A stretch of 61,975 nt of DNA from contig NC_069005.1 of NCBI RefSeq assembly GCF_001194135.2, positions 7,536,456 to 7,598,430 on the forward strand. Reading direction: 5' to 3'. This DNA comes from Octopus bimaculoides (Eukaryota). Positions 9,088 through 55,704 of this stretch are shown one piece after another. The translations under genes were made by a program, and so were the position numbers. Every line of letters starts with the position of its first letter. Within the stretch, counting starts at the first letter, position 1. The notes beneath the pieces are model-generated. The model was given only the letters and a program-made list of their open reading frames with translations. It had not been told where the DNA came from and searched no databases.

Positions 9088-9119
9088 GGCAGTTTTAAAA
9101 TTTTCACTGGTTTTTATAA

Positions 9120-25461: not shown

Positions 25462-25493
<32 letters not shown>

Positions 25494-32069: not shown

Positions 32070-32169
32070 NNNNNNNNNNNNNNNNNNNNNNNNNNNNNNN
32101 NNNNNNNNNNNNNNNNNNNNNNNNNNNNNNNNNNNNNNNNNNNNNNNNNNNNNNNNNNNNNNNNNNNNN

Positions 32170-34119: not shown

Positions 34120-34272
34120 TTAGCTTCTCTGAACAAAATGCTTGCCACCAGCCTGAATCAGTGCGTCTTTAGATCGAAGGAAATGGTCAACCAGTGGACA
34201 ACAGCTTGTTGTGTTAAAGATGGATCTCACAATGTTTCCTGTTTTCTCTGGAGTCTTTTGTTGAGGAAGCCA
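34120..34272 (-). CDS. FAM227A: FAM227-family gene, terminal coding exon (WLPQQKTPEKTGNIVRSIFNTTSCCPLVDHFLRSKDALIQAGGKHFVQRS*)
   Basis: Acceptor ctcactaatttcag, phase 0. FN....PLV.HFL matches the recalled FAM227 FN..G.SPL..YFL motif. The TAA stop at 34120-34122 is followed 4 nt later by AATAAA. A versus B paralogue assignment is not certain. Confidence 0.75.
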   Translation of the reverse strand, partial: WLPQQKTPEKTGNIVRSIFNTTSCCPLVDHFLRSKDALIQAGGKHFVQRS

Positions 34273-35620
34273 CTGAAATTAGTGAGATTGAACAACATTT
34301 CAGAATTGCTAAATTCACTTAGAACAAACAAATATTGGATAACAGTGTTTTGGAAGCAGGCTTTTTTCTCTGCTTCTTGATGTATAAAAAAAGGTATTGG
34401 CAGTCTTTTTTGGGGGAGTGTGCTAAGAGTCATGGTTCATCATCAGGTGGGCCGCAGTATTAAAAGAAATTCAAGGTAACTTTTACATTGGCATGCCATT
34501 CAGAAAGTCTTGTGAGCCACAGATTATCCACAACTAGCAGAGAGTGCGTTATTGGGGAGAGGGTAGGAGAGGCCAGTAATTACTTGGATGATAAATTTAG
34601 GTTGAAGTGAAATTTATTATCGACATATTTTTCAGGAAAAGGAAAAAAGAACATTAAAAGTATAAAAGATAAAATTATCAAGAAAAAAAAACCCCCATTA
34701 CTACAACAAATAATGGGTGTGGGGTAGGCAGCAGCAGATGGGGAGGGGTGGAGTAACGGGTTGTACACTCCAGGCCAAATGGCATGTTCAGTCGCGCCTC
34801 GTGGGCATGACTACAAAGATGTTGCCGCAGAGAATGGCCAGTGACACCCTGCAAAAGCTATTTCATGTTGCGTGATTCATTTCTCAAAAATTGATTTTGT
34901 AACTGATTGTACTTCTTTTTGCAGACAGGTTTTGTGTCTGTGAGGGAGATTATGGCAAGCAGAGTTATGTATCATTCTTATTTAGGGTTACAAAATAATT
35001 AAACTAGCGTCAACATAGCTTTAATGTACGAAGTAACAAAAATGCAACGACTAGTATTTTTTCGGGCTGTCACCATATCAAGGGAGACAACTCTACATGT
35101 ACTGGCCAAAGAGAGAGTTTATTGCTCGATCAAGAGTTATGTACCTTGGCAACTGACGCTATTTGAGCTGCTTACTTCATTTGTTTAGTGACTGTCTAAT
35201 CGCATAATCTCTTCATCGGAGCAGTGAACAAAATAATTTTGACTCTTTGCGTTCGGAATTCAAATCCTGCCATGATCAACTTTGTTTGGATTCTCCTGGG
35301 ATCGATAAATAAACTTCCAGGTCTAAAAGAAGTGGCCTGTTAGAGCTTTCAACAGGATGCCTTTTCATATTTGTTCTTTAGTGGGGTCCAGGCTTTTCGG
35401 CCAGGTCTTTGGTTTGAAGAGACTTGTCCCAAGTCTCAACAGCCCTAAAAAGAGTCAGAGACACTGGTCTTCTCTCCCTCCCCAAACAAGCAGTTAAACA
35501 GAATAGAAGTTTACCAACTGCAACAACAGCTTCAAATTGGCCCTTTCTTCCAATTTCCTTACCCCTTGTTGCAGTACATTGTCATCAACTACATGCAACA
35601 AAATCTATGTTATGAATCCT

Positions 35621-36012
35621 CAGCAGGAGTGGATGTGTGGTGAGTAGCTTGCTTACGAACCACAAGGTTCCGGGTTCAGTCCCACTGTGTGGCACCTTGG
35701 GCAAGTGTCTTCTACTATAGCCTCGGGCCGACCAAAGCCTTGTGAGTGGATTTGGTAGACGGAAACTGAAAGAAGCCTGTTGTATATATGTATATATATA
35801 TATATATGTATGTGTGTGTATATGTTTGTGTGTCTGTGTTTGTCCCCCCAACATCGCTTGACAACCGATGGTGGTGTGTTTACATCCCCATAACTTAACA
35901 GTTAGGCAACAGTGACTGATAGAATAAGTACTAGGCTTACAAAGAATAAGCCTTGGGGTTGATTTGCTCGACTAAAGACGGTGCTCCAGCATGACTGAAA
36001 CGAATAAAAGAA
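35621..36012 (+). mobile_element. tRNA-derived SINE family A
   Basis: Full head, body and tail. Confidence 0.9.
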
Positions 36013-36621
36013 TATAATTCCTAATGATATTATAAAACAAAAGATTTCAAATTTTGGCACAAGGCCAGCAAGTTTGAGGGAGGAGAAAAGTCAATTACAT
36101 CAACCCCAGTATTCAACTGGTACTTATTTTATCGACCACTCATCTTGGTTCTACAAACTCAATTTTTTTACATGAGATATTTTATGGCATGTGCAAGGCT
36201 CAGTGGTTAGAGTGTCGGGCTCACAATCACGAGGTAGTGAGTTCAATTTCCAAGGCTGTGTTGTATTGTTGAACAAGACACTTCATTTCACATTGCTCTA
36301 GTTCACGCAGCTGTAGAAATGAGTTGTGACATCACTGGTGCCAAGCTGTGTCGGCCTTTACCTTTCTCTTGGATAACATCAGTGCCATGGAGAGGACAGA
36401 CTGGTATGCATGGGCAACTGCTGGTCTTTCTTAAACAACACCGCTTGGACTGGTGCCTCAGAGGGGAACTTTCTAGATGCAATCCCGTTGTCATTCATAA
36501 TTGAAGGGAGTCTTTACTTTTACCATTTTATAACAGGCCAACCCATTTTATTTTCAAATAACCATAACATGGCTGTTTGCCAGCTATGTAGGAGTAAATT
36601 ATGCTGAGAATTCATACTTAC

Positions 36622-36764
36622 TTTGATAGGAAAGTTTCTTGAAGTTTTCCTTTGGCAAAAACTCATTGAGATCAATTGTTTGGTGTAAAAATGTTCCCCT
36701 TTGGTGGCCACATAGGAAGCAAGTATCAAATGGTGGTCCAGCTTTGCTCTGTTTAGTTCAGTAA
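36622..36764 (-). CDS. FAM227A: FAM227-family gene, candidate exon 8 (reading frame ambiguous)
   Basis: Strong acceptor (catttctttataacag) and donor GTAAGT. The 143 nt are open in phase 1 to 0, which bridges exon 7 to the terminal exon, but there is little recognisable homology in that frame. Confidence 0.45.
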
Positions 36765-37046
36765 CTGTTATAAAGAAATGGCAGCAGAGATCAACAAAAT
36801 TCTATTCCAGTAATTTCAACAAGACATCTTATCTTCACTTACAACATATGAACCACAATGATACAACTTTTGTATGGCCAGTCAATCTGTTAGAAATAAC
36901 AGCCAAGTCTCCCTCAAATTACATAGAACTGGTTTAACCCTTTAACATTCAGTTTACATTGTCAAATGTAATGCTTGTTTATTTTTAGAATGACATTGTA
37001 AGGTAAAAGTGAGCAGCCAGTCTTAGCTGGCTTGAACATTAAACAG

Positions 37047-37693
37047 GTATGAGGGTCAGCTGAAAAGTTCATAGGCCGACCAAGATACTCTCATGAAATG
37101 TGATCAAATGAGGTTTATTTTTCAATGTAGTCCTTCTTGCAGTCCACACACTTCTTCCATCAGTGTTGCAGTACTTGGATCCCATTGGTGAAGAAGCTTT
37201 GATCTTGTTGGTCAAAATGGTCATTAGCAAGACCTTGATGTCATCATCCTTGCAAAACTGTCCCCCAGCCAAGTGGTTTTCATGTTGGGGAACTGATGGT
37301 AGTCAGACGGGGCCAAATCGGGAGAAGAGGGACAGTGATCAACCAATTCAAAACCACAGCAGCCATTGAAATGACAGACTTGTGCTGGAGCGTTGACCTG
37401 ATAAAGCAAGACCCCTGTTGTCAGTTTTCCTGGGTGTTTGGTCTTAACAGCCTTTCGTAACTGCCTCAGCAAGTTGGCATAGCACTCTTCATTGATGGTG
37501 TGGCCCTTTTCAAGATAGTCAATAAACACAATGCCTTTTTCGTTACAAAAAACAGAGGCCATCACTTTCCCCACAGATGAAATGACTTTGGCCTTCTTTG
37601 GAGTAGGTGAAGAGAAATGCTTCCACTGCATCGATTGTCTCAAAGAGATGAACCCAACACTCATCCTGGATTAGGAAACATTCAAGGAAAGTA
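37047..37693 (-). mobile_element. Mariner (DD34D) transposase relic, catalytic half plus 3-prime TIR
   Basis: FLECFLIQDECWVH, KVMASVFCNEKGIVFIDYLEKGHTIN and SPDLAPSDYHQF. The terminus TA-TGAGGGTCAGCTGAAAAGT lies at about 37049. The 5-prime part is lost in a GT tract and gap. Confidence 0.9.
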
Positions 37694-37740
37694 GTGTGTG
37701 TGTATGTATATATATATGTATATACCTGTGTATACGTGTT

Positions 37741-37777
<37 letters not shown>

Positions 37778-39120
37778 NNNNNNNNNNNNNNNNNNNNNNN
37801 NNNNNNNNNNNNNNNNNNNNNNNNNNNNNNNNNNNNNNNNNNNNNNNNNNNNNNNNNNNNNNNNNNNNNNNNNNNNNNNNNNNNNNNNNNNNNNNNNNNN
37901 NNNNNNNNNNNNNNNNNNNNNNNNNNNNNNNNNNNNNNNNNNNNNNNNNNNNNNNNNNNNNNNNNNNNNNNNNNNNNNNNNNNNNNNNNNNNNNNNNNNN
38001 NNNNNNNNNNNNNNNNNNNNNNNNNNNNNNNNNNNNNNNNNNNNNNNNNNNNNNNNNNNNNNNNNNNNNNNNNNNNNNNNNNNNNNNNNNNNNNNNNNNN
38101 NNNNNNNNNNNNNNNNNNNNNNNNNNNNNNNNNNNNNNNNNNNNNNNNNNNNNNNNNNNNNNNNNNNNNNNNNNNNNNNNNNNNNNNNNNNNNNNNNNNN
38201 NNNNNNNNNNNNNNNNNNNNNNNNNNNNNNNNNNNNNNNNNNNNNNNNNNNNNNNNNNNNNNNNNNNNNNNNNNNNNNNNNNNNNNNNNNNNNNNNNNNN
38301 NNNNNNNNNNNNNNNNNNNNNNNNNNNNNNNNNNNNNNNNNNNNNNNNNNNNNNNNNNNNNNNNNNNNNNNNNNNNNNNNNNNNNNNNNNNNNNNNNNNN
38401 NNNNNNNNNNNNNNNNNNNNNNNNNNNNNNNNNNNNNNNNNNNNNNNNNNNNNNNNNNNNNNNNNNNNNNNNNNNNNNNNNNNNNNNNNNNNNNNNNNNN
38501 NNNNNNNNNNNNNNNNNNNNNNNNNNNNNNNNNNNNNNNNNNNNNNNNNNNNNNNNNNNNNNNNNNNNNNNNNNNNNNNNNNNNNNNNNNNNNNNNNNNN
38601 NNNNNNNNNNNNNNNNNNNNNNNNNNNNNNNNNNNNNNNNNNNNNNNNNNNNNNNNNNNNNNNNNNNNNNNNNNNNNNNNNNNNNNNNNNNNNNNNNNNN
38701 NNNNNNNNNNNNNNNNNNNNNNNNNNNNNNNNNNNNNNNNNNNNNNNNNNNNTATATATGTATGTGTGTTTGTCCCCCCACCATCGCTTGACAACCGATG
38801 CTGGTATGTTTAGGTCCCCGTAACTTAGCGGTTCGGCAAAAAGAGACCGATAGAATAAGTACTAAGCTTACAAAGAATAAATCCTGGGGGTCACTTTGCT
38901 TGATTAAAGGTGGTGCTCCAGCATGGCCGCAGTCAAATGACTAACACAAGTAAAAGAGAGCAAAGAGAGTTACCCCACGCAAGTATGGAAAAACAGGCAT
39001 TAAAATGATGACAATAATCATTATTTATATCTTGTATTCTACAGCAAATTTCAAAGACGGTGTGACCAGATATGTCCAAGCTATCCACTCTTAAAGCTAC
39101 GCTGTGCATATTATTCTTAC

Positions 39121-39247
39121 CTGTCATCCACAACCATATTAGTTCAATAACTGATTGCTTAAAGACATTGTCAAACTGGCAGTGTGAGTCTGGGAAACTG
39201 TGATGGAATGTTCCATAAACTGCCAGTGACATCAGCTTTGGTAATTC
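39121..39247 (-). CDS. FAM227A: FAM227-family gene, exon 7 (ELPKLMSLAVYGTFHHSFPDSHCQFDNVFKQSVIELIWLWMT), phase 0 to 1
   Basis: AG/GTAAGA sites. It matches the recalled FAM227 segment LP.LL..AVY..F...FP.S...F...FK......LW. Confidence 0.9.
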
Positions 39248-39454
39248 CTGGTCAAAGTGAAAGCAAACTTCTAAGTCAATCGGCCATGCTGTGCCTACAC
39301 ACACACATGCGCAAAAAGACAAACATGATATATATTATATATATAAAAATAAAAAAGTATTATTACTGTTATTTATAGTAATAAGGTGGCTAGCAAGTTC
39401 ACACCATTACAGGCACAATATAAGGTAAACTAAGATTCAATAGGGTATATAATA

Positions 39455-39840
39455 TTGTTGATGGCACTCCGTCGCTTACGACGTCGAGGGTTCCAGTTGA
39501 TCCGATCAACGGAACAGCCTGCTCGTGAAATTAACGTGCAAGTGGCTGAGCACTCCACAGACACGTGTACCCTTAACGTAGTTCTCGGAGATATTCAGCG
39601 TGACACAGTGTGACAAGGCTGACCCTTTGAATTACAGGCACAACAGAAACAGGAAGTAAGAGTGAGAGAAAGTTGTGGTGAAAGAGTACAGCAAGGTTCG
39701 CCACCATCCCCTGCCGGAGCCTCGTGGAGCTTTTAGGTGTTTTCGCTCAATAAACACTTACAACGCCCGGTCTGGGAATCGAAACCGCGATCCTATGACC
39801 GTGAGTCCGCTGCCCTAACCACTGGGCCATTGCACCTCCA
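39455..39840 (-). mobile_element. Young, CpG-intact tRNA-derived SINE family D
   Basis: Minus-strand head TGGCCCAGTGGTTAGG (A box) and GGTTTCGATTCC (B box), followed by a non-tRNA body. Confidence 0.85.
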
Positions 39841-40534
39841 GGGTGCAATTTTAGCACTACTTGCTAAAATCAGAACCAAGGCTCAAAGAACTACCATAAA
39901 CTCATGGTAAAGATACACAGAAGCAATGCAATGAACATATGAGAAACAGGCTTCCCTTTGCATTGAACACATCAGTAAGTAATGAATATTTCAATACCAA
40001 TTGATTTCACATTTTTCATGACAAACATACTCTGCGATCTTCAGTTGGAAATAACATTTTAACATCTATTTAGCAAGTGGTATTATATACCCTATTGAAT
40101 CTTAATTTCCTTTACATATATAAAAGTGAGTTCACAGCTGTAACCTACACCAGTTTCGCATAACCAGCCCACTCATAAGTACCTTGGATCGTAAGGCGAC
40201 ATGCTGTGCTTGAGGAGACCTATTGAGTCAAGTACATCAAAATCAAATCAAATCACAATCAGAATCAAATGGAAATAGCAGTTATGATCCCCGTGCCGGT
40301 GGCACGTAAAAAGCACCAGCCGATCATGGTCGATGCCAGCCCCCTCTGGCCCCTATGCTGGTGGCATGTAAAAAAGCACCCACTACACTCTCAAAGTGGT
40401 TGGTGTTAGGAAGGGCATCCAGCTGTAGAAACTCTGCCAGATCAGACTGGAGCCTGGTGCAGCCTCCTGGCTTCCCAGACCCCAGTCGAACCATCTAACC
40501 CATGCCAGCATGGAAAACAGATGTTAAACGATGA

Positions 40535-40577
<43 letters not shown>

Positions 40578-41152
40578 TACATACACATATATATATAGTG
40601 GTGCTCCAGTATGGCCACAGTCAAATGACTGAAACAAGTAAAAGAATGCACAAACATACACATATAGTTCAAATGTACAGAAAAGAAAAGCCAAAGACAG
40701 GTGAGGTGAACCACAGGTACTTGGGAAGAATGGAAAAGTCTTTGATGTTTCAAGTGTCTATGCTCTTTGACAGAAAGGCATGAGAAGAAAAAAAGAATGG
40801 AGAGAGACAAAAATGTTTTGGGATTAATGGTCTAACATGAAAAAATCCTTATACACACATGCACAGACACACACATACATATATACATACACACACATAC
40901 ATATATACATACGCACACACATATACGTATATATCAGAAAGCAATCTTTATATCCAACTTAACATGGATGTTTGTTAGAGTACCAGGTACTATGTTAGTT
41001 ACCTTGAGAGGACCTTTTCTATTGATACATGATGCAATACATCCACATTAAGTTGGTCCAATTTGAACAAATCTATCTAAATGGCTCAAAACCAACCCTG
41101 CTGGAGTGCAAACTGAAAGGTTGAAAGATCAAATGGAAAGTTCTGGAATTAC

Positions 41153-41296
41153 CTTAAATAAAGTGTCTGCAAAATACTTTTCCCTCCTTGCTAGGTGAAT
41201 GAGGTTCACATAATTGACAGCAACTCGATGGAACAACTTCTGCTGTACAGATAAATCAGGCTGGAAATTGGTGAGAAATAAATACCAGAAGATGTC
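41153..41296 (-). CDS. FAM227A: FAM227-family gene, exon 6, FWWh-domain core (DIFWYLFLTNFQPDLSVQQKLFHRVAVNYVNL...TLFK), phase 0 to 0
   Basis: AG/GT sites, 144 nt. It matches the DSFWW.F...[FY].P....Q..LFDRI...Y signature of FAM227A/B. Confidence 0.92.
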
Positions 41297-41550
41297 CTGT
41301 TGATAGAAACATTGTTTTAATTAAGTCAGGAAAAGAAGATTGCCATATTTTCTGACATACAAGTCAATGTGGTATTTCTATATCCTTAAATGCATATATA
41401 TGATTTTAACAAAACGGAGGTAAAGCAATATATTCACAGACAAAACTTCCAACTACCAACACTTGAGACTCCAACGCCTTCTACTTTTCAACGAAACATG
41501 TTACTCTTTATAAGAGTTCAACGAGTCTACTAATTAATCACACAGGAGTA

Positions 41551-42014
41551 TTAACCCTTTCGTTACCAACCAGGCTGAAACCGGCTCTGGCTCTGAGTAC
41601 AAATATCTTGTTTTCATAAGTTTTGAATTAAAATCTTCCATCAAACCTTTTAGTCACAATTTATGTTCTTAACACTAGCTTAATGATAACTAAGTTATTT
41701 TACTAAATCTTTTGTTATATTTAAAGTAATTGAAAGAAACACAGAGCATCTCAACAGAAATATGGTAACAAAAGGGTTAACAAATGATTAATTTAACCCT
41801 TTTGTTACCAACCCGGCTGAAACTGGCTCTGAATACAAATGTCTTGTTTCCATAAGTTTTGAATTAAAATCTTCTACCAAACCTTAGTCACAATTTATGT
41901 TCCTAACACTAGCTGAATGATAACTAAGTTATTTTACTAAATTCTTTGTTATATTTAAAGTAATTGAAAGAAACACAGAGCATCTCAACAGAAATATGGT
42001 AACAAAAGGGTTAA
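41551..42014. mobile_element. Two adjacent TTAA-flanked piggyBac-type MITEs, family 2 (41555-41776 and 41797-42010)
   Basis: Each reads TTAA-CCCTTT(C/T)GTTACCA ... TGGTAACAAAAGGG-TTAA. The two bodies are highly similar. Confidence 0.85.
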
Positions 42015-42902
42015 TGTCTGTCACCACAACAAGTAAATAGTGAAAACATGAAGTGTAAACATTCAAACATCATCGCTATCTTTCCAAATCCTGCTGCATT
42101 CCACAAGAATACGTTGGTCCTCCAAAGTCGTCATAGTGCATAAGTTGACCTCCCATTTTTGACCATAAATTTGGGTCCGGAAAATTGGACTGAAGCAACA
42201 TGAAACAAAGTGTCTTGCTCAAGAACACAACACATAGCCTGGTCTAGGAATCGAAATCATAATCTTGCAATCATGTGTGCAACTCCGTAGCCCCTGGGTT
42301 ACATGGCTTCAATTCAGCAAGTATGGGAAAACAATTATGAACTGAAGAAGGAGTTACAAAAAATTATGTAGTAACAACTGTGTATTTCTAGCAAGTATGA
42401 AATAACAACCATGGTTAACCCTTTAGCATTTAAACTAGCCATATTTGGCCCAAATATTCTACCTGCTTTTGCCTCTCATACCTATGCTACAATGTCAATG
42501 TCATTCTAAGAATAAGCAATCACATCATCAAAATCTTGAAGCTACAAGATAATGCATGATTAATTCAAAACAATGTGAATAAATATTACTTTTGACAGAG
42601 TAATCGGAATGCAAGAGGGTTGAACCAGCCATATCCAGCCAAGATATTCTACCTGGTTTATTTTCAAATCAGCCAGATCTAACTTCTCACACCTACCCTA
42701 CAATGTCATTCTAAAAATAAACAATCACATCATCGAAATCTCGAAGCTGAGATAATACATAATTAATTCAAAACAATGTGAATAGATAAACATTACATTT
42801 GACAAAGTCATTTGAATACTAAAAGGTTAACTCATATTTCCAGGAGAAGGGAAATGAAAACTTGACATTAATAAAAATTTAAAAAACTGAACAGAACTGC
42901 AC

Positions 42903-42962
42903 CTGTAATATGTCTTGGCATCTTTTGGAATATAGAATTTTCTCAAACGTTGGGCGCTGGAG
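42903..42962 (-). CDS. FAM227A: FAM227-family gene, exon 5 (LQRPTFEKILYSKRCQDILQ), phase 0 to 0
   Basis: Long polypyrimidine acceptor and CAG|gtgcag donor. It aligns with the LEKFL.S.....IWL segment preceding DSFWW. Confidence 0.85.
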
Positions 42963-43315
42963 CTGTAAATAGCAAAAAAAAATTAAGGTTAAAAGACAGA
43001 GACAAACAAATAAACAAAAGAAAAATGCAAAAAGTAGAGAAAAGAAAATGGAAGTTGAAAGACAACCAGATACCAAAGTTAATTGACCAACTTTGAACAC
43101 CCAACCAGAACAACTGACCTCCATAGAAAAAACAAAAAACCCTGGAACCATGAAATAACCTTTTAGCAGCTTATCATACATCAATATTGGGAAAATTCAC
43201 AACCTTCTGTATCATTAAACCACTATTGTTCCTGAAAGTTGTTTTCTATTTCTTCTACAGACTGTTTGAAGCTCACTATGTTCCTACACCTTGATCCTTA
43301 GATCTTACCTTTATA

Positions 43316-43442
43316 TACAGGGTGTCCACAAAGTCTGGGTACATGAGGATTAACACATACTTTAAGAAGTTATTGTTTCTTATATTTAATTGTTTATGTT
43401 ATGATTTTATTTACTCCATGTACCCAGACTTTGTGGACACCC

Positions 43443-43446
<4 letters not shown>
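43316..43446. mobile_element. Tc1/mariner-type MITE (127 bp) with 28-bp perfect TIRs
   Basis: TA-CAGGGTGTCCACAAAGTCTGGGTACATG ... CATGTACCCAGACTTTGTGGACACCCTG-CA. The right TA is mutated. Confidence 0.85.
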
Positions 43447-43488
<42 letters not shown>

Positions 43489-44645
43489 CTCAATCAATAA
43501 CCTTACAAAGTAGATGCAATGGAACAACCATATCATTGACCTGGTCACAGTTGTGTCACACCAACTTTAGTGTGAAAAAACTGACTGCAATTAATGGCTT
43601 CAAACTTTGGCATAAAGCATGAATAATAAAGAGAGGTGGATGGCAAAGATGGTTGGTGATTTAGGAGGAACACAGCAGTATAAAAAGGAGACAGCATTAG
43701 GCAATAAGTGGCTAAATAATTAGAGCATCTTACAAAATGCTTTGTGGTCTCTACTTGTAGCACCTTCACATTCTGTGTTCAAATCCTGCTGAGGTTGATT
43801 TCTGTTTTACTTTCTTCTGGGGTCAATAATATCATTTAAATACTGGGTTCACATCATTGACTATCCTCCTCCCACAAGACTGGGCCTTTGTGCCAATATT
43901 TAGGGTGGTGACTTGATTGAAATGGTAAACTGACAAGATGTGTTGATGTTCTTTGGTCCTAGGTCATCCCTGGTCAAGAAAATATATGACCAAAGACATT
44001 TCAGCCATGACCATCCTGTTTCTTTTTTTTTTCCAGGTACAGGTATGGATGTGGAGTAAAAAATTCACTTTCCAACCACATGGCTTTGGATTCAGTCCCA
44101 GTGCATGGCACCTTGGACAAGTTTCTTTCACTCTGTCCCTGGACCAATGGAAGCTTTGTGAGTAGATTTAGTAGATGGAAACCGAAAGAAGCCTAATGTT
44201 TGTGTTTATGTTCCCGTAACTTAGTGGTTCAGCAAATGAAACCAATAGAATAAATGCTAGGCTTAAAACAAAAGTACTAGGGTCAATTTGTTCAAATAAA
44301 ACTCTTCAAGGCAGTGCTCCAGCATGGCCATAGTCCAATGACTGAAACAAGTAAAAGATTGGAATCACATTATCTAATGGGTTTTCCTTTTTAAGATTGA
44401 TAGGGGTGAGTCAGAGGAATTTTGGCTGTTTGACCTGCTACAAATAGCAGCCAAATCCTTCCTCAAATCACAACCTACTGACTTACAAAAACACAGAAGG
44501 TCACAGTGCATATTGTAGTCCTTACTATACAAAAAGACATTATGGTCACTGCTGGAATGACAATTGATCAATAGGTCTGCTGGATCAAGGCTGACCCAGG
44601 GCTAAGCAATAACAACAACATTTAAGGCACAAAGAATTTACTGAC

Positions 44646-44759: not shown

Positions 44760-46519
44760 CTGGAAAAGAGAATGAGAAATATACACATAAACAGCAGATG
44801 CATGCATAAATACATCATCATCGAACATCCATTTCTATGCTGACATGGGCTGGATGGCTTGACAGGTACTGGCAAGGCCAGGGGCCACACCAAGTTCCAT
44901 AGTCTGTTTTGGCATGGTTTCTATGGCTAGATATCCTTCTTAATGCCAATTATTTTACAGAGTGAACTGGCTGCTTTTTACATGGCACCTTGCTTTTAGG
45001 AAATATATAATACAAAACCACAATAAGACAGAANNNNNNNNNNNNNNNNNNNNNNNNNNNNNNNNNNNNNNNNNNNNNNNNNNNNNNNNNNNNNNNNNNN
45101 NNNNNNNNNNNNNNNNNNNNNNNNNNNNNNNNNNNNNNNNNNNNNNNNNNNNNNNNNNNNNNNNNNNNNNNNNNNNNNNNNNNNNNNNNNNNNNNNNNNN
45201 NNNNNNNNNNNNNNNNNNNNNNNNNNNNNNNNNNNNNNNNNNNNNNNNNNNNNNNNNNNNNNNNNNNNNNNNNNNNNNNNNNNNNNNNNNNNNNNNNNNN
45301 NNNNNNNNNNNNNNNNNNNNNNNNNNNNNNNNNNNNNNNNNNNNNNNNNNNNNNNNNNNNNNNNNNNNNNNNNNNNNNNNNNNNNNNNNNNNNNNNNNNN
45401 NNNNNNNNNNNNNNNNNNNNNNNNNNNNNNNNNNNNNNNNNNNNNNNNNNNNNNNNNNNNNNNNNNNNNNNNNNNNNNNNNNNNNNNNNNNNNNNNNNNN
45501 NNNNNNNNNNNNNNNNNNNNNNNNNNNNNNNNNNNNNNNNNNNNNNNNNNNNNNNNNNNNNNNNNNNNNNNNNNNNNNNNNNNNNNNNNNNNNNNNNNNN
45601 NNNNNNNNNNNNNNNNNNNNNNNNNNNNNNNNNNNNNNNNNNNNNNNNNNNNNNNNNNNNNNNNNNNNNNNNNNNNNNNNNNNNNNNNNNNNNNNNNNNN
45701 NNNNNNNNNNNNNNNNNNNNNNNNNNNNNNNNNNNNNNNNNNNNNNNNNNNNNNNNNNNNNNNNNNNNNNNNNNNNNNNNNNNNNNNNNNNNNNNNNNNN
45801 NNNNNNNNNNNNNNNNNNNNNNNNNNNNNNNNNNNNNNNNNNNNNNNNNNNNNNNNNNNNNNNNNNNNNNNNNNNNNNNNNNNNNNNNNNNNNNNNNNNN
45901 NNNNNNNNNNNNNNNNGTTCCATTTTTACAGGGGTTGCTGTTCTGGTAAAGGAAATATGACAATTGGATTAGCTGGTTGATTAGACTGGTAACAGGTAAT
46001 AAACTCGTTTATGTTATTTTAACTGTAATTATTTCACTGATTTCTCACCTTGGGCAGCAGCCATGTTAGGGACTGCCTTGGAGGGTTTTCAGTCAATGAA
46101 ATCAACCCCACTACTTATTCTATCACTACCCCTACATAGACAAACTAATGAAAACCAGCTGCCAAGTAGTGTCACATGAAGGCAAGCTACAAAGAGAGAG
46201 AGAGAGAGAAACGTGCACACGAACACACGCANNNNNNNNNNCCAGACCAGGCTGTGCATTGTGTTCTTGAGCAAGACACTTTATTTCACGTTGCTCCAGT
46301 TCACTCATCTGTCGAAATGATTAGTAACATCACTGGTGTTAAGCTGTATTGGCCCCTTTGCCTTTCCCTTGGATAACATCAGTTGCGTGCAGAGAGGAGG
46401 CTGGTATGCATGGGCAACTGTTGGTCTTCCACAGACAACCTTGCCTGAACTTGTGCCCTGGAGAGGAAACTTCCTAGGTGCAATTCCATGGTCATTCATG
46501 ACCGAAGGGGGTCTTTTAT

Positions 46520-46550
<31 letters not shown>

Positions 46551-47014
46551 ATGCAAGTGTATGTCTGTGTGTGATGGGCTTCCACAATTACCATCTATCA
46601 ATTTCACACACATGGAATTGGTCAATCTGAAGCTATGGTAAAAGTAATTTGGTCAAAGTGCCAATTGTCCAACATAAATCATAGCAGAGTACGACTGAAC
46701 TCAAAACCATATGGTTTTGAAGTGTATTTCTTAACTACAGGGCCATAACTGCAACTATGTTATGGGCGAATCCTGTACACCCCTACGTGACTGAAAGTGG
46801 ACTAAACAGATTTGAATAAATAAAGAACTGTGTGAACTGTCAATGGCAGTTGACAGCATTGGTCGTCTGTGTTGGTTATTGTGTTAGTTTAATATCATAA
46901 CTACGTTGGAGTAGTACAGAGTGTGTTCTGTGTGAACATAATTATTCTGCGATAGGTTATTCTAGATAACCATATCCAAATATTTATTTGGGCAATACTA
47001 TTCTTACACCTGAT

Positions 47015-47406
47015 GTGTACAGAGTGGCTGTGTGGTAAGTAGCTTGCTTACCAACCACGTGGTTCCGGGTTCAGTCCCACTGCGTGGCATCTTGGGCAAG
47101 TGTCTTCTACTATGTCCTCGGGCCGACCAAAGCCTTGTGAGTGGATTTGGTAGACGGAAACTGAAAGAAGCCCATCGTATATATGTATATATATGTGTGT
47201 GTGTCTGTGTTTGTCCCCCTAGCATTGCTTGACAACTGATGCTGGTGTGTTTATGTCCCCGTCACTTAGCGGTTCGGCAAAAGAGACCGATAGAATAAGT
47301 ACTAGGCTTACAAAGAATAAGTCCCGGGGTCGATTTGCTCGACTAAAGGTGGTGCTCCAGCATGGCCGCAGTCAAATGACTGAAACAAGTAAAAGAGTAA
47401 AGAGAG

Positions 47407-47408
<2 letters not shown>
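47015..47408 (+). mobile_element. tRNA-derived SINE family A, near-consensus copy
   Basis: Complete head, body and tail. Further copies lie at about 38753-38970, 44036-44360 and 48518-48905(+), and at 56220-56520 and 56638-57030(-). Confidence 0.9.
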
Positions 47409-47473
<65 letters not shown>

Positions 47474-47880
47474 GTAAAGGCTGTTTACCAATATAATGTG
47501 GCTGTCCTGGAAAGGACAATATCACTGTTGCTTTAGCCCCAAGAAACATCATTTCTAGCTGTCTATATGATACAATATCTGTGTCCTTATATTTTCAAAC
47601 AGGGAGTTCAGCACTCCCACCTGGCACAAAACAACATCTGTGGACTAGTTTCTGGGTTATTGCCTTTATCAATAACACAGAATGGCGTAGCATTACACTG
47701 AGTATATAAAAAGGATAAAATATATTACTGATTTTTAGGGAATGAAAAGAAGTGAAAGGTCACACCATATTTGGGATCAAAATAGATTTAATTGAAAGGT
47801 GGGGGGTCGCTTCATATTGGAAATCACAAATCTTTTAGAACTATTGAGTTACATTAACAGAACATAGGAACTCTACTCAC

Positions 47881-47936
47881 ATTATTGAAACCAGTGTTCT
47901 GGTCTTCAGTTCCCAGGAAACTGCAGTTTGGTAAAT
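47881..47936 (-). CDS. FAM227A: FAM227-family gene, exon 3 (LPNCSFLGTEDQNTGFNN), phase 1 to 0
   Basis: Acceptor gttttaccccag and donor GTGAGT. The 56 nt give the required phase change. Confidence 0.75.
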
Positions 47937-48628
47937 CTGGGGTAAAACATGAAGGCAAGAGGAAGTGAGTGAGGGATAGGAAATGAGAGAGAGGGGGAGT
48001 AAGAGAAAGATGGAGATAGGAAGTGAGAGAGACAGAAAGAGACGGAGAGAGAGAGAGTCAAGAAGGTAAAACATGAGAAACAAAGAGTTTTTAGTTAAAC
48101 AACGCTGTCAGATACAAATATGAAGAATACCTCACAAATGTTCTAAACTTTGTATACATACACACACAAACTCGGGCACATACTCATGCCAGACACAAGA
48201 GAAATTTAATACATTCCAGGATTATCAAAGATATGCTTCAATTTTTCTAAAATTGAATGAAATAAATAAAAATGTTGAATACACACAAACTTGTACATAA
48301 TTAACAAAATAAATAATAATAATCCTTTCTACTAAAGGCACAAGGCCTGAAATTTGGTGGGAGGCAGTAAGTCAATTACATCAACCCCAGTGCATAACTG
48401 GTACTTAATTTATCAACCCCGAAAGGATGACAGGCAAAGTCGACCTCAGCGGCATAATAATAATAGTAGCAATATAATTATAATCACACATTTGGTGTGT
48501 GAATTTTGGCCCATCCTGGATTCAGTCCCACTGCGTGGCACCTTGGGCAAGTGTCTTCTATTATAGCTTCGGGCTGACCAAAAACTTGTGAGTGGATTTG
48601 GTAGACGGAAACTGAAAGAAGCCCGTCG

Positions 48629-48665
<37 letters not shown>

Positions 48666-49192
48666 GTATATGTATATGTGTGTGGGTGTTTGTGTGTCTG
48701 TGTTTGTCTCCCCATCATCGCTTGACATCTGATGCTGGTGTGTTTACGTCCCCATAACTTAGCGGTTCGGCAAAAGAGACCGATAGAATAAGTACTAGGC
48801 TTCCAAAGAATATGTCCTGGGGTTGATTTGCTCGACTAAAGGCGGTGCTCCAGCATGGCCGCAGTCAAAAGACTGAAACAATTAAAAGAGTAAAGAGAGT
48901 AAAGAATATATAATATAGGTTTGTTTCATTTGAGGTATCATTAAATTTAGGGTGGCAAGAATGGTTCATAAAATATATGTAGGGTTTCCATAATTTTTTG
49001 AAAAATTCTAAGAGCTGCTCATTATTGAAATGGCAGGGATTCCAAAACTTTTGCAAAGTCTGGGACTAAGTCAATAATTTATTCCCCAACCTCATTTCTA
49101 TATCTTGCCTCTTGCAACAATTTCAATACAATACCACCCAACCATTTTTGCTCGGAATAAAAGGAAAACAAACATGTTTCTCAAAGACTTAC

Positions 49193-49333
49193 TCAATCTT
49201 GTATTTTTACTGCTTGAACCTTGAGCTCCAGCAGTTGCTTTCTTTTCAAAGACCAAAGGCAGATGGTATCGTAGTTCTTCGTTGTAATGCTTGAGATCTT
49301 GGTTCAAACCATCAACAGAGCCAACACTATATG
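49193..49333 (-). CDS. FAM227A: FAM227-family gene, exon 2 (YSVGSVDGLNQDLKHYNEEL...NTRL), phase 1 to 1
   Basis: Acceptor ctttttcctaaatgacactccag and donor GTAAGT. GSVDGLNQ resembles the FAM227A GSMHQVNQ motif. Confidence 0.8.
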
Positions 49334-49659
49334 CTGGAGTGTCATTTAGGAAAAAAGACGATTCCAAAATCATGGTGGAGTGGACTGAGAAAGATGGATG
49401 ACCTGATGGTTGTATCGACATCAAAGTCATAATTACATGGTGAAACGTTTTGGCAACTCACTGTCTACAACAGAAATGCCCAACCACTATGGGCTGGGCA
49501 TTGTTGGGGACCAAGCCGCACAAAAAAAAAAAAATTACTTCTACTTTATTGACTATTGCAGTCTGCTCTGCGTTTTACATTACATATGTAAGGTAATCTT
49601 CAAGTTTAGGGTGGTAAAAAAAAGTAAATAAAAATATACAAGGGAAATAACTTAACGTC

Positions 49660-50062
49660 TTACTCGTATCATCCGTGCTACTCTGAAATGTGTGTTGTTG
49701 TTTTTTTTTTAGCTGTTTATAAATAAATCACACACGTGACTAGATATCATAGTACCGGCTGAGAGATCGAAAATCCCTCATGGAAGACCGGCTGCACAAC
49801 AACTTATTGTTCCTCAAAATGAAATCCTCACTCGTCATTTAATATTAGAAGAATATTGGAATATTAGTGAATTATGCAGCAGTTCAAGACACAAAATGTT
49901 GGAACGATGTGCGGGCCGTCGGCTTATTAGGAATAAGTTTATCTGCGAGGATTGTTTAGTACCATGCGGACTTGTTAAAAAAAGCAAAAAAACACGTGTA
50001 TGATTTATGTATAAACAGCTAAAAAAAACACCACATTTCAGAGTAGTACAGATTATAAGAAT
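49660..50062. mobile_element. About 400-bp MITE with about 75-bp imperfect TIRs
   Basis: ctactctgaaatgtg...tagctgtttata.ataaatca.acacgtg at the left end is mirrored at the right end. Confidence 0.7.
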
Positions 50063-50919
50063 TGGATGAGATATGACGGCTCGGCCGTCTCTCCCCAGTT
50101 CTTATATTAATCATTAAAATCCTGAAATACAACAACACAAGGGATAACGGTAACGACAGATCAATAGTTTATTCTAGGTTAGTGTAGAGCCGTTTCGTTC
50201 CTGGGTGAATAGGCATGCCGCTAGAATACCAAAGAAGCTTCGACCACATGTCGGGGTCGAGTTGGGACATACGTGTTGTCGCCACGGCTGCTGGATGGAA
50301 AAGAGGGCGAACGCTATTGCTTTCTCTCCACTACAAGATAATACTAGTAAGACGTTAAGTTATTTCCCTTGTATATATATTTATTTACTTTTTTTACCAC
50401 CCTAAACTTGAAGATTACCGTCTGCAGTATTATTATGAAATAGAAGTGGATTTGGCTTTCAAATAGTTGCCGTGACACTTCTATTTCAACACAATCTCAA
50501 GTGAAGACAGTAACCAAACAAGTGCGACTCTGATATGATAGGAAATTTATTAAATTAAACTAAGGTTAGAGGGAGGACAAGATGCATTTCAAAAGTTGGG
50601 ATGCATGCCCATCCAGAATGTCATGGTCTACAAATTAGTATATGAAAAAAAAAGTTTAAGGTGCTTTTTGTAACTTCTTCGTAATTAAAACGACTTTTAT
50701 GTCTAAAAATTCTTTGAAATAATTAATTACGTGTTTAAAATAAAAACTATGAAAATCGTGAAATCTTCAAACATAAATATTTTCTTTGGATAACAGAAAA
50801 AAAGGTAAATATATAAATAAAAAAAACCTTGCGTTGCAACTTTGGCCAGCTCCAAGATGATTCTGTCCTTGAAGAAATTCTCGTAAATAAACTAAATTTA
50901 AGACTTCAAGAAAGGATAC

Positions 50920-51043
50920 GTGGTTTAGTATTAATGATATCTTCTTGGAGTTTCTGTCTTGCTTTCTTTTCTGCTTCCGTTTCGACGTATTTCTGATCAA
51001 TAATGTGCAGAACCATCGAAGTTCCTCTTAGAGCCGTGGTCAT
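50920..51043 (-). CDS. FAM227A: FAM227-family gene, first coding exon (MTTALRGTSMVLHIIDQKYVETEAEKKARQKLQEDIINTKP), ends in phase 1
   Basis: ATG at 51043, with an alternative at 51016. The only usable donor before the in-frame stop is C|gtatcc, which is phase 1 and matches exon 2. Confidence 0.65.
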
Positions 51044-51484
51044 ATTTAATATGTTTGATTTGCTACAAACAGTAGCCAAATATCCCTCTCAAATTCCCGT
51101 CTTTAGAGGAAAATACTACTACTAATAATAATAAAACTACAGAAAGAAAAGTACATTGTCAACGGTTATAGTCCATGACATAGAAAAAGACAAGACCTGC
51201 TCAGCCAACAATGAGAAAATCTGTTCGATGTGACCAAGGAGACTAAACAATTTACTCAAATTAATTTACATACAAACTAGCAAATTAAAAAAAAAACTTA
51301 AATCTGCTTCCACGAAAAAAGAAAGTCCTTTTAAAGTTTAGCTTTAATCAATAGTCTAAAGTAAATATATTCGTTTTATTTTATGTGTGTGTGTGTAAGT
51401 AAAAAAAAAAAAAATCTCCCGGAATACGAAAATAAATGTGTAGATTCTTGACCCTCTTGTGTTGCTGACTCTGCAGTTTTTCAC

Positions 51485-51493
51485 AAAATGGCG
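51485..51493 (+). promoter_or_regulatory. YY1-type motif (AAAATGGCG) at the probable CBY1 5-prime non-coding exon (about 51450-51600, donor CTG|gtatgt at 51601)
   Basis: Motif match in a locally CpG-retaining segment between the divergent genes. The exon limits are inferred. Confidence 0.45.
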
Positions 51494-51679
51494 TTACGAA
51501 GTTGTTTGTCTCTGTTCGATATTTAGGGAATAAATCAATTGACTCTTTGTGAATTAAGGAAAGGAATAAACATCTTCGTTTCTACTGGTGAAAATATCTG
51601 GTATGTTTTATCGATTCTTTTGTTGTTTTTGTTATAGAGAGGGAAATCTCTCTCACTCTGTCTGCCGTCAAGGTATATA

Positions 51680-51693
51680 GTTGCCTTGACAAC
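51680..51693. promoter_or_regulatory. RFX X-box (GTTGCCTTGACAAC)
   Basis: It has 12 of 14 matches to the GTTGCCATGGCAAC consensus and lies between two divergent genes, one of which is a known ciliary gene. Confidence 0.65.
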
Positions 51694-53108
51694 CGCTTAA
51701 CAGGTCTGAAGCTTAAGTTTCTATCATTCAACGAACTCGCCTAGTTTGTTCGATTTGCATTCATTCCAACCGTGACTGTCATGTCCGCACGCACACACGA
51801 GTGCCGTAATCGTTAGTCCTATGGCTTGTCGGGAATTAAAACAAAAGTGGCCAGACATACCTCCTTTTTGAACTTGTCACCGTCTTGAATGCTGTATGGA
51901 TGAGTGTGTATACACCGTTTCTAAAGAATAGTCAGGTATTATCAAGAGCGGCAAAACCTGTAATTTCTTCGGGTGCACATGTTTTGAGCATCGTAGATAA
52001 CTTGGCGATAAAATAAAATGTGAACGAAGAAGGGGAGACAGGCCTCTACTTTTTATTTTTAAGCTTTTGAAAACTTTTTCAGACTTATGTTATAAACCTC
52101 TGAGATTATTTGATACCAAATAATAAATGACTAAATAAAGTTAATATTTTTGTGTTTTTTGAATTTGTAAACCTTTCGCGCTGTAATATTTATAGTTTCA
52201 ACATACGATAGAAAGGCGGAGGCAAAGAATACGCACACCACCCGTTTTCGGCGTAACACTAACCCTAAACACCGGATGTGCAGATTCTTTACTTTCGCCC
52301 GATGGAAGTACAATTTCAAGTTGTCTGAAAGGGTGATTCTCTAAAAATATGTGAAACATGAATATGAAAATAAATAAATAATAAATAACTTTCGATAAAA
52401 TGTTATTTTCAAGACTGAAGAATTGCGAAAAAGTGTGGCTCGAAAGATTTTTTTTTTTTTTTTTCTCCAGAATTGTTGTAGGATCATCTACGGTGTTTAG
52501 AGCAGACACATCCGCAGAAATAATGTCGGTTATGTCTTTTAGCGCTCTAGATAATTTCCGATACTATTCTGTAGGTGCACACACACACACATACATATAT
52601 ATAGTCAGTAGTTCATATCTCTGAAAAAGAATCATACACTAAGCCATTAGAGCGATAATACATCTTTTTAGGAAGTTAAAGCCAGTCAGAGAGTGACCAT
52701 TGGTTATGCACCTATAAAGCATTTAGCAGCATAGGTGACTGGTCAGACTCAAATGGCTGAAAGCACATAACCAAGCTCTAATTGTAGAAAATACCTGTGG
52801 AAGGGGTAGATTCAAGATGAGACGAAGTGGTGAGAAAGGATCTTCAGACGTTGGGCCTCACAGAGGGGATGACTAGGGACCAGGAGATGCGATGATTTGC
52901 TAAGACTCATCTTGAGAAGACACATCAGGTTAAGTAAAATTGCTGTCTCCCAAACATACAGGCTTGTCCTTTCAGGTACCGATGCCACTTAAAAAGCACC
53001 CATGCCGGTGCTGCATTGACACACCTGTGCTGGTAGCTCGTTTATAATCCTGGTAACCCACACCAAATTTATGTATTTCTTTTTTTTTTTTTCTTTTATA
53101 GAACCAAG

Positions 53109-53289
53109 ATGCCATTATTTGGAAATAAATTTTCTCCCAAGAAGATTCCTAATCGAAGAAGCCAGTCTTTAAGCAATCTAAGCTTGGATTCATCTCAAGC
53201 AAAAGAGGAATTTGGGATTGAATGTGGACCGGCCAGAATAAACTTGGGGGGAAGCGAAATGACTTTTGAAGACGGTCATTGGATTCCTG
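53109..53289 (+). CDS. CBY1: Chibby homolog, coding exon 1 (MPLFGNKFSPKKIPNRRSQSLSNLSLD...FEDGHWIP), ends in phase 1
   Basis: Clear similarity to human MPFFGNTFSPKKTPPRKSASLSNL...FENGQWI. An acceptor (ttttatag) 8 nt upstream of the ATG implies an upstream non-coding exon. Confidence 0.95.
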
Positions 53290-54520
53290 GTAATTAGNNN
53301 NNNNNNNNNNNNNNNNNNNNNNNNNNNNNNNNNNNNNNNNNNNNNNNNNNNNNNNNNNNNNNNNNNNNNNNNNNNNNNNNNNNNNNNNNNNNNNNNNNNN
53401 NNNNNNNNNNNNNNNNNNNNNNNNNNNNNNNNNNNNNNNNNNNNNNNNNNNNNNNNNNNNNNNNNNNNNNNNNNNNNNNNNNNNNNNNNNNNNNNNNNNN
53501 NNNNNNNNNNNNNNNNNNNNNNNNNNNNNNNNNNNNNNNNNNNNNNNNNNNNNNNNNNNNNNNNNNNNNNNNNNNNNNNNNNNNNNNNNNNNNNNNNNNN
53601 NNNNNNNNNNNNNNNNNNNNNNNNNNNNNNNNNNNNNNNNNNNNNNNNNNNNNNNNNNNNNNNNNNNNNNNNNNNNNNNNNNNNNNNNNNNNNNNNNNNN
53701 NNNNNNNNNNNNNNNNNNNNNNNNNNNNNNNNNNNTATATATATATATATATATATATATGCAATTGTGTATGTATATAATATATATGTTTATGTATGTA
53801 TATATATATCTATACATATAAATTTGACATGGGCAATTCTTTCTTATCTTGGAATTCACGGTCAAACAGCTGGGTGGAATTGTGTGAAAAATTACACAGA
53901 TGTGTAGAATGATCCGGTGGTGTTGCTGGGCATTGTATTCTTCATAGCTCCCATGGTTACCAAGATAATCTACTATAATAATACTCTTGTGTTTATGAAT
54001 GAGAAAGGAAGGGGTGATGTCATACTTGGTAGTGGGATGATGAAAATTGTACGTTGAAAAAAATAAATCAAACAGCGTTTCAACTCTGTATGAATATATG
54101 TGTGCGTGTGTGTATATAAAAGAGAGGTATGTGAATGTGTTTGTGTTTATTTTTTGATTTGGTTGTTTTTTTTTTTTTTTGTTGGTCAGTTATTTTTGTT
54201 AACGAAGACTTGATAAATGAAATAGCCAAATCACTCACCTTTACCTCACTGTTTTCCCCATACTGATATTGTCCTTGTCTCTGTCAGTGAGAGAGCCACA
54301 AAAAGTGTGTTTACAGCATGGCCTTTTACCAATCCTTCCACCCCTCCTCTACTCAACGGCTAGAATTTGCTCAATGATTCAGTTTAATCAAAAAGACAAA
54401 ATGCTGTTGTTGATGCTCCTGTTATATAAATCAGATATTTGCAATGATTTGATTAGTACCATAATTAGTACCATAATTAGTACCATTGATTAGTACCATA
54501 ATTTCTTCCAATGCATGCAG

Positions 54521-54636
54521 CCAGTGGCTTTGGTGCTGCCAGCCATCAAGAACTGATGATTCTACGTAAGAAAAATGAGCAACTACTCAATGAAAACAAT
54601 TTTCTGAAGATAAAATGTGAAACTTTGTTAGACATG
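54521..54636 (+). CDS. CBY1: Chibby homolog, coding exon 2 (SGFGAASHQELMILRKKNEQLLNENNFLKIKCETLLDM), phase 1 to 0
   Basis: AG/GTAAGT sites. The coiled coil matches LRRRNQQLEEENNLLRLKVDILLDM. Confidence 0.95.
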
Positions 54637-55620
54637 GTAAGTTCGAATTCCTTGACCCTTTAATTATGAAATGAAATTCTAGGGTTACTCCAATAAATGA
54701 CATTAGATATCTACCAAAATATAGAACTGGTATTTTCTGCAAATCACATTGTCTCAATAAACTTGACAGGTCTTGGTGGTGGTGGTGATCGTCTTAACCC
54801 TTTAGCATTCAGATTATTCGGTTGAATGTAATCCTTATTGATTCACATTGTTTTGAATTACCTTGTAGCTTCAAGATTCCAATGATGCGATCGTTTATTT
54901 TTAGAATGACATTGTAGGGTTGGTGTGAGAGTCTGGATCTGACAGTTTGATATGAAACAAGTAGAATATTTGGTTGAAAACTGATGGTATTCAGATTACT
55001 CTGTCAAATGTAATTCTTATTCATTCACATTGTTTCGAAGTCATTATGCCACGTAAAAGACACCCAGCACACTGCTAAGTGGTTGGTATTAGAAAGGGGC
55101 ATCCAGTCATAGAAACCAAATCAGAATTGAACCTGATGCAGCTCTCTGGCTTGCCAGCTCTGGGCAAACTGTCCAACCCATGCCAGCATGGAAAACAAAT
55201 GTCAAAGGATGATGATGATTATCTTACAGCTTCAATATTTTCATAATGTGATTGTTAATTTATAGAACAACATTGTAGGGTACATGTGAGGGGCTGAATC
55301 TCACCAGTTTGAATATAAAAGAAGTAGAATACATGAACCTTATACGGCTGGTTTAACTCGTGTTATAAACTCTTCATGCATTATCTCATAGCTTTAAGAT
55401 TTCAACATGATTGTGTATTTTTAGAATGACATTGTAGGGTAGGTGTGATGGGCCAGATTCAGCCAGTTTGAACATAAAACAGATGGAATATTTGGGCTGG
55501 ATATGAACAGTTAAAATGCCAAAAGGTTAAACCAGGTGTCAGGATGACCCTTAGGAAATGGGTGGAACCTTGATTAAATCAACTGTAATATTGAAATTAT
55601 GCAATTTTTTTTTCTTGCAG

Positions 55621-55704
55621 CTGACTGAAACAACTGTGAACTCTCACCTTCAAATTCAAGAAATTACCCAACTAAAGAACATGGTACGAAGTAAAAACAG
55701 ATGA
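55621..55704 (+). CDS. CBY1: Chibby homolog, coding exon 3 (LTETTVNSHLQIQEITQLKNMVRSKNR*)
   Basis: T-rich acceptor, with the TGA stop at 55702-55704. The total product is 126 aa. Confidence 0.95.
   Translation: MTETTVNSHLQIQEITQLKNMVRSKNR

Follow-up and report, generated by a model that had tools for sequence, protein, structure and literature searches.

A head-to-head FAM227–CBY1 gene pair in Octopus bimaculoides, a candidate ancient bilaterian microsynteny

A stretch of 61,975 nucleotides of the Octopus bimaculoides genome (assembly GCF_001194135.2, contig NC_069005.1, positions 7,536,456 to 7,598,430 of the forward strand; hereafter the window, in which all octopus coordinates are given) contains two divergently transcribed genes, a member of the FAM227 family on the minus strand and CBY1 on the plus strand. 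CBY1 encodes Chibby, a basal-body and transition-zone protein with an established role in basal-body docking and ciliogenesis. The two genes stand head to head in the octopus, as they do in an amphioxus, a brachiopod, an annelid and in human, and this paper is concerned with the structure of the pair, its age, and what may have kept it together. The window as a whole has 40% G+C, is strongly depleted in CpG, and is interrupted by 17 gaps filled with N.

The CBY1 gene has three coding exons on the plus strand with canonical splice sites, which join in frame to encode 126 amino acids. The exon carrying the start codon lies at 53102–53289 (coding part 53109–53289) and opens at a 3′ splice acceptor (ttttatag followed by AACCAAGATG, at 53101), and it is followed by coding exons at 54521–54636 and 55621–55704 (stop codon 55702–55704), both placed by their splice sites, the Pfam match and alignment to Argonauta DNA. 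The protein matches the Pfam Chibby profile PF14645 with E=4.6e-37 and 127 bits (cutoff 24.8) over profile positions 1–113 of 114. Its database relatives are 100–159 amino acids long and contain a Chibby domain in 40 of 40 cases; each of those named by its source is called chibby or chibby homolog 1, the closest being chibby homolog 1 of Argonauta hians (126 amino acids, 91% identity). In DNA alignment to the Argonauta locus the CBY1 exons, at 77–84%, are the sole parts of the region that align. On these matches we take the predicted gene as shown to be the octopus CBY1 orthologue. An N gap at 53298–53735 begins within intron 1, 8 nucleotides past the exon 1 donor, and hides no coding exon, because the protein has the length of its Argonauta counterpart and matches the profile from end to end. 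Argonauta conservation around the first of these exons begins at 53100, at the acceptor itself, and since the exon opens at that acceptor a non-coding CBY1 exon must exist further upstream.

The FAM227 gene is longer and less complete. Scans with Pfam of stop-masked minus-strand reading frames yielded an FWWh domain (PF14922) near 41.3 kb with 78.4 bits (cutoff 25) and E=7.1e-22; none was found in the minus frames of 46–51 kb, because the domain lies further 3′. The two exons that encode it were set by their splice sites and joined as a phmmer query against 1.8 billion representative proteins, which returned 171 relatives, namely two octopus models at 100% identity (XP_014787777.1 and XP_014787777.2, named 'protein FAM227B(-like) [Octopus bimaculoides]') and 169 others. 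Seven exons with GT-AG boundaries reproduce residues 1–255 of XP_014787777.1 exactly. Coding exon 1 (51043–50920, from the ATG at 51043 to a GT donor) supplies residues 1–41, and its product resembles the N-terminus of the Sepia homologue; it has no upstream acceptor and therefore probably carries the 5′ untranslated region (UTR), with the transcription start site expected shortly above 51043. Exons 2 (49333–49193) and 3 (47936–47881), both with AG and GT sites, and exon 5 (42962–42903), likewise bounded by splice sites, are exact to the NCBI model, and exon 4 (44759–44646) encodes a conserved 'FPGF...LP' motif and is 51% identical to the Sepia protein. Exon 6 (41296–41153), also set by splice sites, encodes the core of the FWWh domain (DIFWYLF...) and exon 7 (39247–39121) its C-terminal part (…IWLWMTG), the junction between them being backed by the perfect matches to both NCBI models. 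N gaps at 45034–45916 and 46232–46241 lie within intron 3.

The 3′ part of the gene is affected by a further gap, at 37778–38752. A conserved C-terminal exon is present at about 34260–34120 (its 5′ boundary approximate), ending in …SIFNTTSCCPLVDHFLRSKDALIQAGGKHFVQRS with the stop codon at 34122–34120, and tblastn with the Sepia, Lingula, Haliotis and Owenia proteins matches it with E values from 3e-8 to 1e-5. The conserved family exon 'PSP..W..WN..LEP' was not found in the sequenced DNA; it is expected where this gap lies, and the NCBI octopus models end or run into intron there. The gap therefore probably conceals at least one exon, and the FAM227 coding sequence is incomplete in the window. 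A mariner-type transposase remnant (37227–37670, minus strand; Pfam Transposase_1, E=6e-20) sits within the FAM227 intron and adjoins the gap. The residues that are invariant in the FWWh family (D-x-F-W, F-P-x-S and W…G) have octopus counterparts in D166, F168, W169, S234, W253 and G256, and the C-terminal family motif 'SPLVxHFL' reads 'CPLVDHFL' in the exon at 34.2 kb. The domain match and these residues show the predicted minus-strand gene to belong to the FAM227/FWWh family. Two cruder searches were uninformative: raw amphioxus open reading frame (ORF) pieces compared with the window by tblastn gave low-complexity noise only, and a word-indexed search with a single 63-amino-acid FAM227 exon gave no match. 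An earlier note on this DNA, made from the letters alone, had put the start codons at 51043 and 53109 and the outer limits of the pair at 34120 and 55704, and these positions agree with the exons matching the NCBI FAM227 model and the Pfam Chibby profile.

Which vertebrate gene the octopus FAM227 corresponds to deserves comment, as human has both FAM227A and FAM227B. Isoforms of one FAM227 gene in each of Priapulus, Lytechinus and Corticium carry both 'A-like' and 'B-like' names, and scallop proteins within a single 90% cluster likewise bear both. Because naming is inconsistent within single genes, the NCBI label 'FAM227B' for the octopus gene says nothing about its orthology. A neighbour-joining tree sets the vertebrate A and B clades apart with the invertebrates between them, although its branches are long and its root unreliable; as the long branches leave the tree unable to place the duplication, we used the naming of single invertebrate genes instead. 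Invertebrates have a single, pre-duplication FAM227 that is orthologous to vertebrate FAM227A and FAM227B together, and the concern raised in the earlier note, that the octopus gene might group with the B form, falls away since the two names are interchangeable here.

The two octopus genes are separated by 2065 bp from ATG to ATG. Of the 17 N gaps, four fall within the span of the pair, but the segment 46242–53297 is free of N and holds FAM227 exons 1–3 and the first CBY1 coding exon on one contig, and their adjacency is therefore not a scaffolding artefact. The divergent pair that had been predicted is accordingly real, with its FWWh gene on the minus strand and its Chibby gene on the plus strand of gap-free sequence.

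Comparison loci were fetched around orthologues in other animals and read through gene calls and Pfam matches, with the CBY1 exon positions confirmed by tblastn in Branchiostoma, Lingula and Owenia. All three have the octopus arrangement, an FWWh gene on the minus strand and a Chibby gene on the plus strand placed 5′-to-5′ with no called gene between them. The distance from ATG to ATG is 742 bp in the amphioxus Branchiostoma lanceolatum, in which Tom22 and DNA-PKcs come next, 1185 bp in the brachiopod Lingula anatina and 6898 bp in the annelid Owenia fusiformis. The human order we take to be FAM227A–CBY1–TOMM22, with FAM227A and CBY1 divergent. The human CpG cg00500457 (chr22:39055589, hg19) on the EPIC array is annotated 'CBY1(+)/FAM227A(−)' (PMC11505613), and CBY1, FAM227A, JOSD1 and SUN2 are placed together at 22q13.1 (PMC11943489); the earlier note had likewise given FAM227A and CBY1 as immediate divergent neighbours there. 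Independent origin of this arrangement in octopus, Lingula, Owenia, amphioxus and human is not credible, and it must be at least as old as the common ancestor of protostomes and deuterostomes. The proposal that the pair represents an ancient bilaterian microsynteny is supported.

The interval between the two start codons (51044–53108) contains no N and no other gene signal, and would comprise a putative shared promoter together with a non-coding first exon and first intron of CBY1. There are several features of note. First, a block at 49800–52600 has an observed/expected CpG ratio of 0.7–1.4, compared with 0.2–0.5 on both flanks, as expected if a single promoter region, unmethylated in the germline, extended over both 5′ ends. 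Second, the strongest plus-strand splice donor in the interval outside a dispersed repeat is CTG/GTATGT at 51601; it lies 558 bp from the start codon of FAM227 and defines a candidate non-coding CBY1 exon 1 at about 51480–51600 (its 5′ limit approximate); the top non-repeat donors on the CBY1 strand lie 382 bp from the FAM227 ATG in amphioxus and 273 bp in Lingula, and in octopus, amphioxus, Lingula and Owenia alike the CBY1 ATG follows within a few nucleotides of a 3′ acceptor. This predicted architecture lends support, short of proof, to the earlier note's expectation that the 5′ ends of FAM227 and CBY1 probably lie only a few hundred base pairs apart. Third, the dispersed repeat has a copy at 52798–52880, shortly before the CBY1 ATG exon where the interval is poor in CpG, and this suggests that the interval has been lengthened by insertion. 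Other copies of the repeat lie at 3981–4047 and 4884–4953.

The interval also contains an X-box-like palindrome of the type bound by RFX factors, GTTGCCTTGACAAC at 51680–51693; the window has no other match to GTTRCCNNGGYAAC with one mismatch or fewer (consensus tested: GTNRCC-N0-3-RGYAAC). The chance of a single such site falling in the 2.07-kb interval is about 0.04. A 28-bp block around the site is conserved upstream of Argonauta CBY1 (Argonauta locus 5895–5923) and, low-complexity matches aside, is the top match when the octopus interval is compared with the region upstream in Argonauta, scoring 17 against a null of 11.9±1.2, a score reached in none of 300 simulations. No common promoter motif was found in all four of the octopus, amphioxus, Lingula and Owenia intervals. 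The Owenia locus has two perfect palindromic X-boxes, GTTGCCATGGTAAC at 19538–19551 and GTTACCATGGTAAC at 20283–20296, 745 bp apart, and both lie in the first coding intron of CBY1, which is 24 kb long and has a galactosyltransferase gene nested in it. At the FAM227 end, the start codon lies inside a YY1-type motif in amphioxus (CCAAGATGGCGGC, 9246–9262) and in Lingula (AACATGGCGGAC, 8803–8819), and its position over the ATG suggests a very short 5′ UTR in these species; the octopus has no YY1-type motif at the FAM227 ATG, and a YY1-like AAAATGGCG occurs on the CBY1 strand at 51485. From the CpG-undepleted block, the non-coding first exon of CBY1 and the X-box-like site we infer one putative shared FAM227/CBY1 promoter.

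TOMM22, dNK (deoxynucleoside kinase) and DNA-PKcs were sought in the window and not found. A block of about 20 kb at 12181–32070 consists of CpG-containing tetranucleotide repeats, (ACGA/TTCG)n, (AACG)n and (ACGT)n, that are degenerate, with a unit identity of about 67% and an observed/expected CpG ratio of 3.0–4.1 as against 0.2–0.7 elsewhere in the window; several of the N gaps interrupt it. An ORF of 178 amino acids on the minus strand at 3364–3897 has no Pfam match; it could be one exon of a gene that is not annotated, or could have arisen by chance.

We propose that the octopus pair was inherited from an ancestor at least as old as that of protostomes and deuterostomes and that both genes are transcribed from one compact promoter region, a reading that we judge probable while allowing considerable room for doubt. 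Under this proposal the promoter region would be unmethylated; FAM227 transcription would start just upstream of its own ATG, and that of CBY1 some hundreds of base pairs off, at a short exon without coding sequence that splicing would join to the ATG exon. Ciliogenic factors, of which an RFX-type protein acting at the X-box is the candidate, would switch on both genes in ciliated cells. A chromosomal breakpoint in so short an interval would be expected to harm one or both promoters, producing a bias towards retention and leaving the pair breakable nonetheless.

Several observations weigh against this proposal. First, the pair is broken in a number of lineages. In medaka CBY1 has a phospholipase-B gene as its divergent neighbour, in the nemertean Tubulanus the divergent neighbour is an SAP/RRM gene, and in Lottia FAM227 and CBY1 are on different scaffolds. 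In Pecten, Haliotis and Gigantopelta FAM227 is head to head, at about 300 bp, with a SelR/MsrB gene of about 110 amino acids (Pfam E=9e-18), and no CBY1 was found within 10 kb in Pecten or Gigantopelta, the two of these loci that were searched for it; the FAM227 promoter therefore does not need CBY1. Even in Argonauta, the nearest relative examined, blastn and tblastn find no FAM227 exon in the 10 kb upstream of CBY1, so that the pair is apparently broken in the sequence available, and A. hians may have lost FAM227 or may carry it elsewhere. Second, none of the intervals in amphioxus, Lingula and Owenia has a strict X-box, and in the octopus window the loose pattern shows no enrichment (3 matches against 10 expected). 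Third, the Owenia interval, at 6.9 kb, is too long for a classical bidirectional promoter.

The pair has thus been broken repeatedly, and any selective constraint upon it is therefore a bias and not an absolute requirement. The constraint suggested in the earlier note stands to the extent that octopus, Lingula, Owenia, amphioxus and human have retained the pair; it cannot be taken as absolute given the lineages that have not, and the shared promoter and the functional link to Chibby biology are putative. In the wider gene-order comparison that the note called for, amphioxus, annelid and human keep the pair and the scallop (Pecten) has MsrB in place of CBY1. Judged from these gene orders, the octopus keeps the ancestral FAM227–CBY1 state that was lost in gastropods and bivalves. 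The FAM227–MsrB arrangement of the latter is a derived pairing, and its locus spans are 5446–9632 in Pecten, 1587–9708 in Haliotis and 1–9743 in Gigantopelta. A second conserved lophotrochozoan linkage is found at the other end of FAM227, where dNK lies tail-to-tail just downstream in Lingula (1–1917), Pecten (26805–31868), Tubulanus (15241–17674), Gigantopelta (40534–43938) and Haliotis (34978–42686).

The strongest competitor is neutral persistence, in which an ancestral pair has been kept only because its interval is a tiny target for breakpoints, and the genes are neither co-regulated nor functionally related. The losses just described, which amount to at least five or six independent events among the 11 lineages examined, are as this explanation would have them, as is the fact that FAM227 in molluscs is just as well paired with MsrB. 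In amphioxus, moreover, bidirectional promoters are shared by about a quarter of neighbouring genes, and many ancestral pairs decay slowly (PMC6292497). It fits less well with the survival of the pair for over 500 million years in five lineages (octopus, brachiopod, annelid, amphioxus and human), one of them with a heavily rearranged coleoid genome, or with the X-box-like block conserved in two octopods, or with the enrichment of human FAM227A in ciliated cells (PMC12991005), which it shares with CBY1. We therefore regard neutral persistence as unlikely, if a possibility to be taken seriously.

Further from the evidence is regulatory entanglement, in which enhancers of one gene lie in the introns of the other and tie the two together, with no sharing of the promoter itself. 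This mechanism is put forward for many ancient microsyntenic pairs (PMC3514665), and would accommodate the persistence of the Owenia pair despite its ATGs being 6.9 kb apart. The pairs concerned usually involve developmental regulators, however, and not a small ciliary gene; alignment of Octopus with Argonauta reveals no conserved non-coding block in the introns of FAM227 or CBY1; and the compact pairs, at 0.7–2 kb, better fit a link at the level of the promoter, all of which make entanglement decidedly improbable. As for an artefact of mis-scaffolding across the N gaps, to which the number of gaps in the window and in the span of the pair might point, or convergence from independent origins, we give these next to no credence, since the 5′ exons of both genes share gap-free sequence, the same pair occurs in the same orientation in independent assemblies (Branchiostoma, Lingula, Owenia and human), and the chance of two given genes out of some 20,000 repeatedly becoming divergent neighbours is negligible.

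The principal value of the pair is as a testable functional lead for the orphan FAM227 family; the mechanism proposed above is plausible and unproven. Human FAM227A and FAM227B both lack an assigned function, and in the literature searched no paper characterises either; where FAM227 is mentioned beside cilia-related words, none of the papers examines its function. One paper, which draws on the Human Protein Atlas, places human FAM227A in the group 'ciliated cells – cilium assembly' (PMC12991005). Relatives of FAM227 are present in the chytrid Spizellomyces and the ichthyosporean Chromosphaera, and also in a sponge, a coral, a sea urchin, a priapulid, a rotifer and a flatworm, and a spread that includes flagellated opisthokonts such as the first two is compatible with a role in the flagellum or cilium. 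Structure offers less guidance. An AlphaFold2 model of the N-terminal 257 amino acids of the octopus protein has a confident helical FWWh bundle (pLDDT mostly above 90 over residues 120–255), but a fold search of the PDB with this model returned nothing significant (best E=0.28, TM below 0.25), and a sequence search of the PDB with FAM227 gave no match and no solved structure.

These lines of evidence point to a possible cilia-related role for FAM227. The partnership with CBY1 of more than 500 million years, the distribution among flagellated opisthokonts and the human ciliated-cell listing combine into a hypothesis that is cheap to test, namely that FAM227 acts in ciliogenesis or at the basal body. 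A more specific version, which we consider doubtful, is that FAM227 is an unrecognised component or cofactor of the basal-body and transition-zone Chibby module (CBY1–CIBAR/FAM92–DZIP1L), and that the two genes have shared a single RFX-driven bidirectional promoter from a time before protostomes and deuterostomes diverged, retained because both proteins would be required together, in matched amounts, for building the cilium. Apart from function, the pair constitutes a natural experiment on bidirectional promoters, having been kept in octopus, brachiopod, annelid, amphioxus and human, swapped to FAM227–MsrB in gastropods and bivalves, and dissolved in teleosts.

The class to which the pair belongs, that of ancestral bidirectional gene pairs, is already known, and FAM227–CBY1 is a new example of it. 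The pair is not named in the searchable main texts or the examined supplements of the microsynteny papers, in keeping with the earlier note's suggestion that it had not been described as a conserved unit, although it may sit unnamed in supplementary lists. Like the ancestral bidirectional promoters and ancient microsyntenic pairs already reported (Marlétaz et al. 2018, PMC6292497; Irimia et al. 2012, PMC3514665), it consists of unrelated protein-coding genes arranged 5′-to-5′ and conserved across phyla. In chordates 372 ancestral bidirectional promoters have been inferred (Marlétaz et al. 2018, PMC6292497), and their loss after the teleost genome duplication has been termed 'disentanglement' (PMC6292497). 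Loss of the FAM227–CBY1 pair in medaka fits this pattern. Such pairs are reported to be enriched in housekeeping genes, whereas FAM227 and CBY1 are cilia-associated.

The closest comparison is with the human locus at 22q13.1, where the orthologues are likewise on opposite strands and the 5′ ends abut or overlap (PMC11505613). The octopus locus differs in having the single pre-duplication FAM227 (the 'FAM227B' of NCBI), with ATGs 2 kb apart and a repeat inserted between them, and in its far flank: Tom22 lies beyond CBY1 in amphioxus, whereas no TOMM22 was found in the 6 kb downstream of octopus CBY1. The FAM227–MsrB pair of gastropods and bivalves shares with the octopus the same FAM227 gene facing a divergent neighbour. 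In that pair, however, the neighbour lies about 300 bp from the 5′ end of FAM227, dNK lies tail-to-tail downstream, and the partner is SelR/MsrB and not CBY1, a derived state that the octopus does not have. Finally, PACRG–PRKN and EVC–EVC2 are head-to-head pairs with a shared promoter and at least one ciliary partner, as proposed here. EVC and EVC2 are paralogues, however, and PRKN is not ciliary, whereas FAM227 and CBY1 are both plausibly ciliary and are unrelated in sequence.

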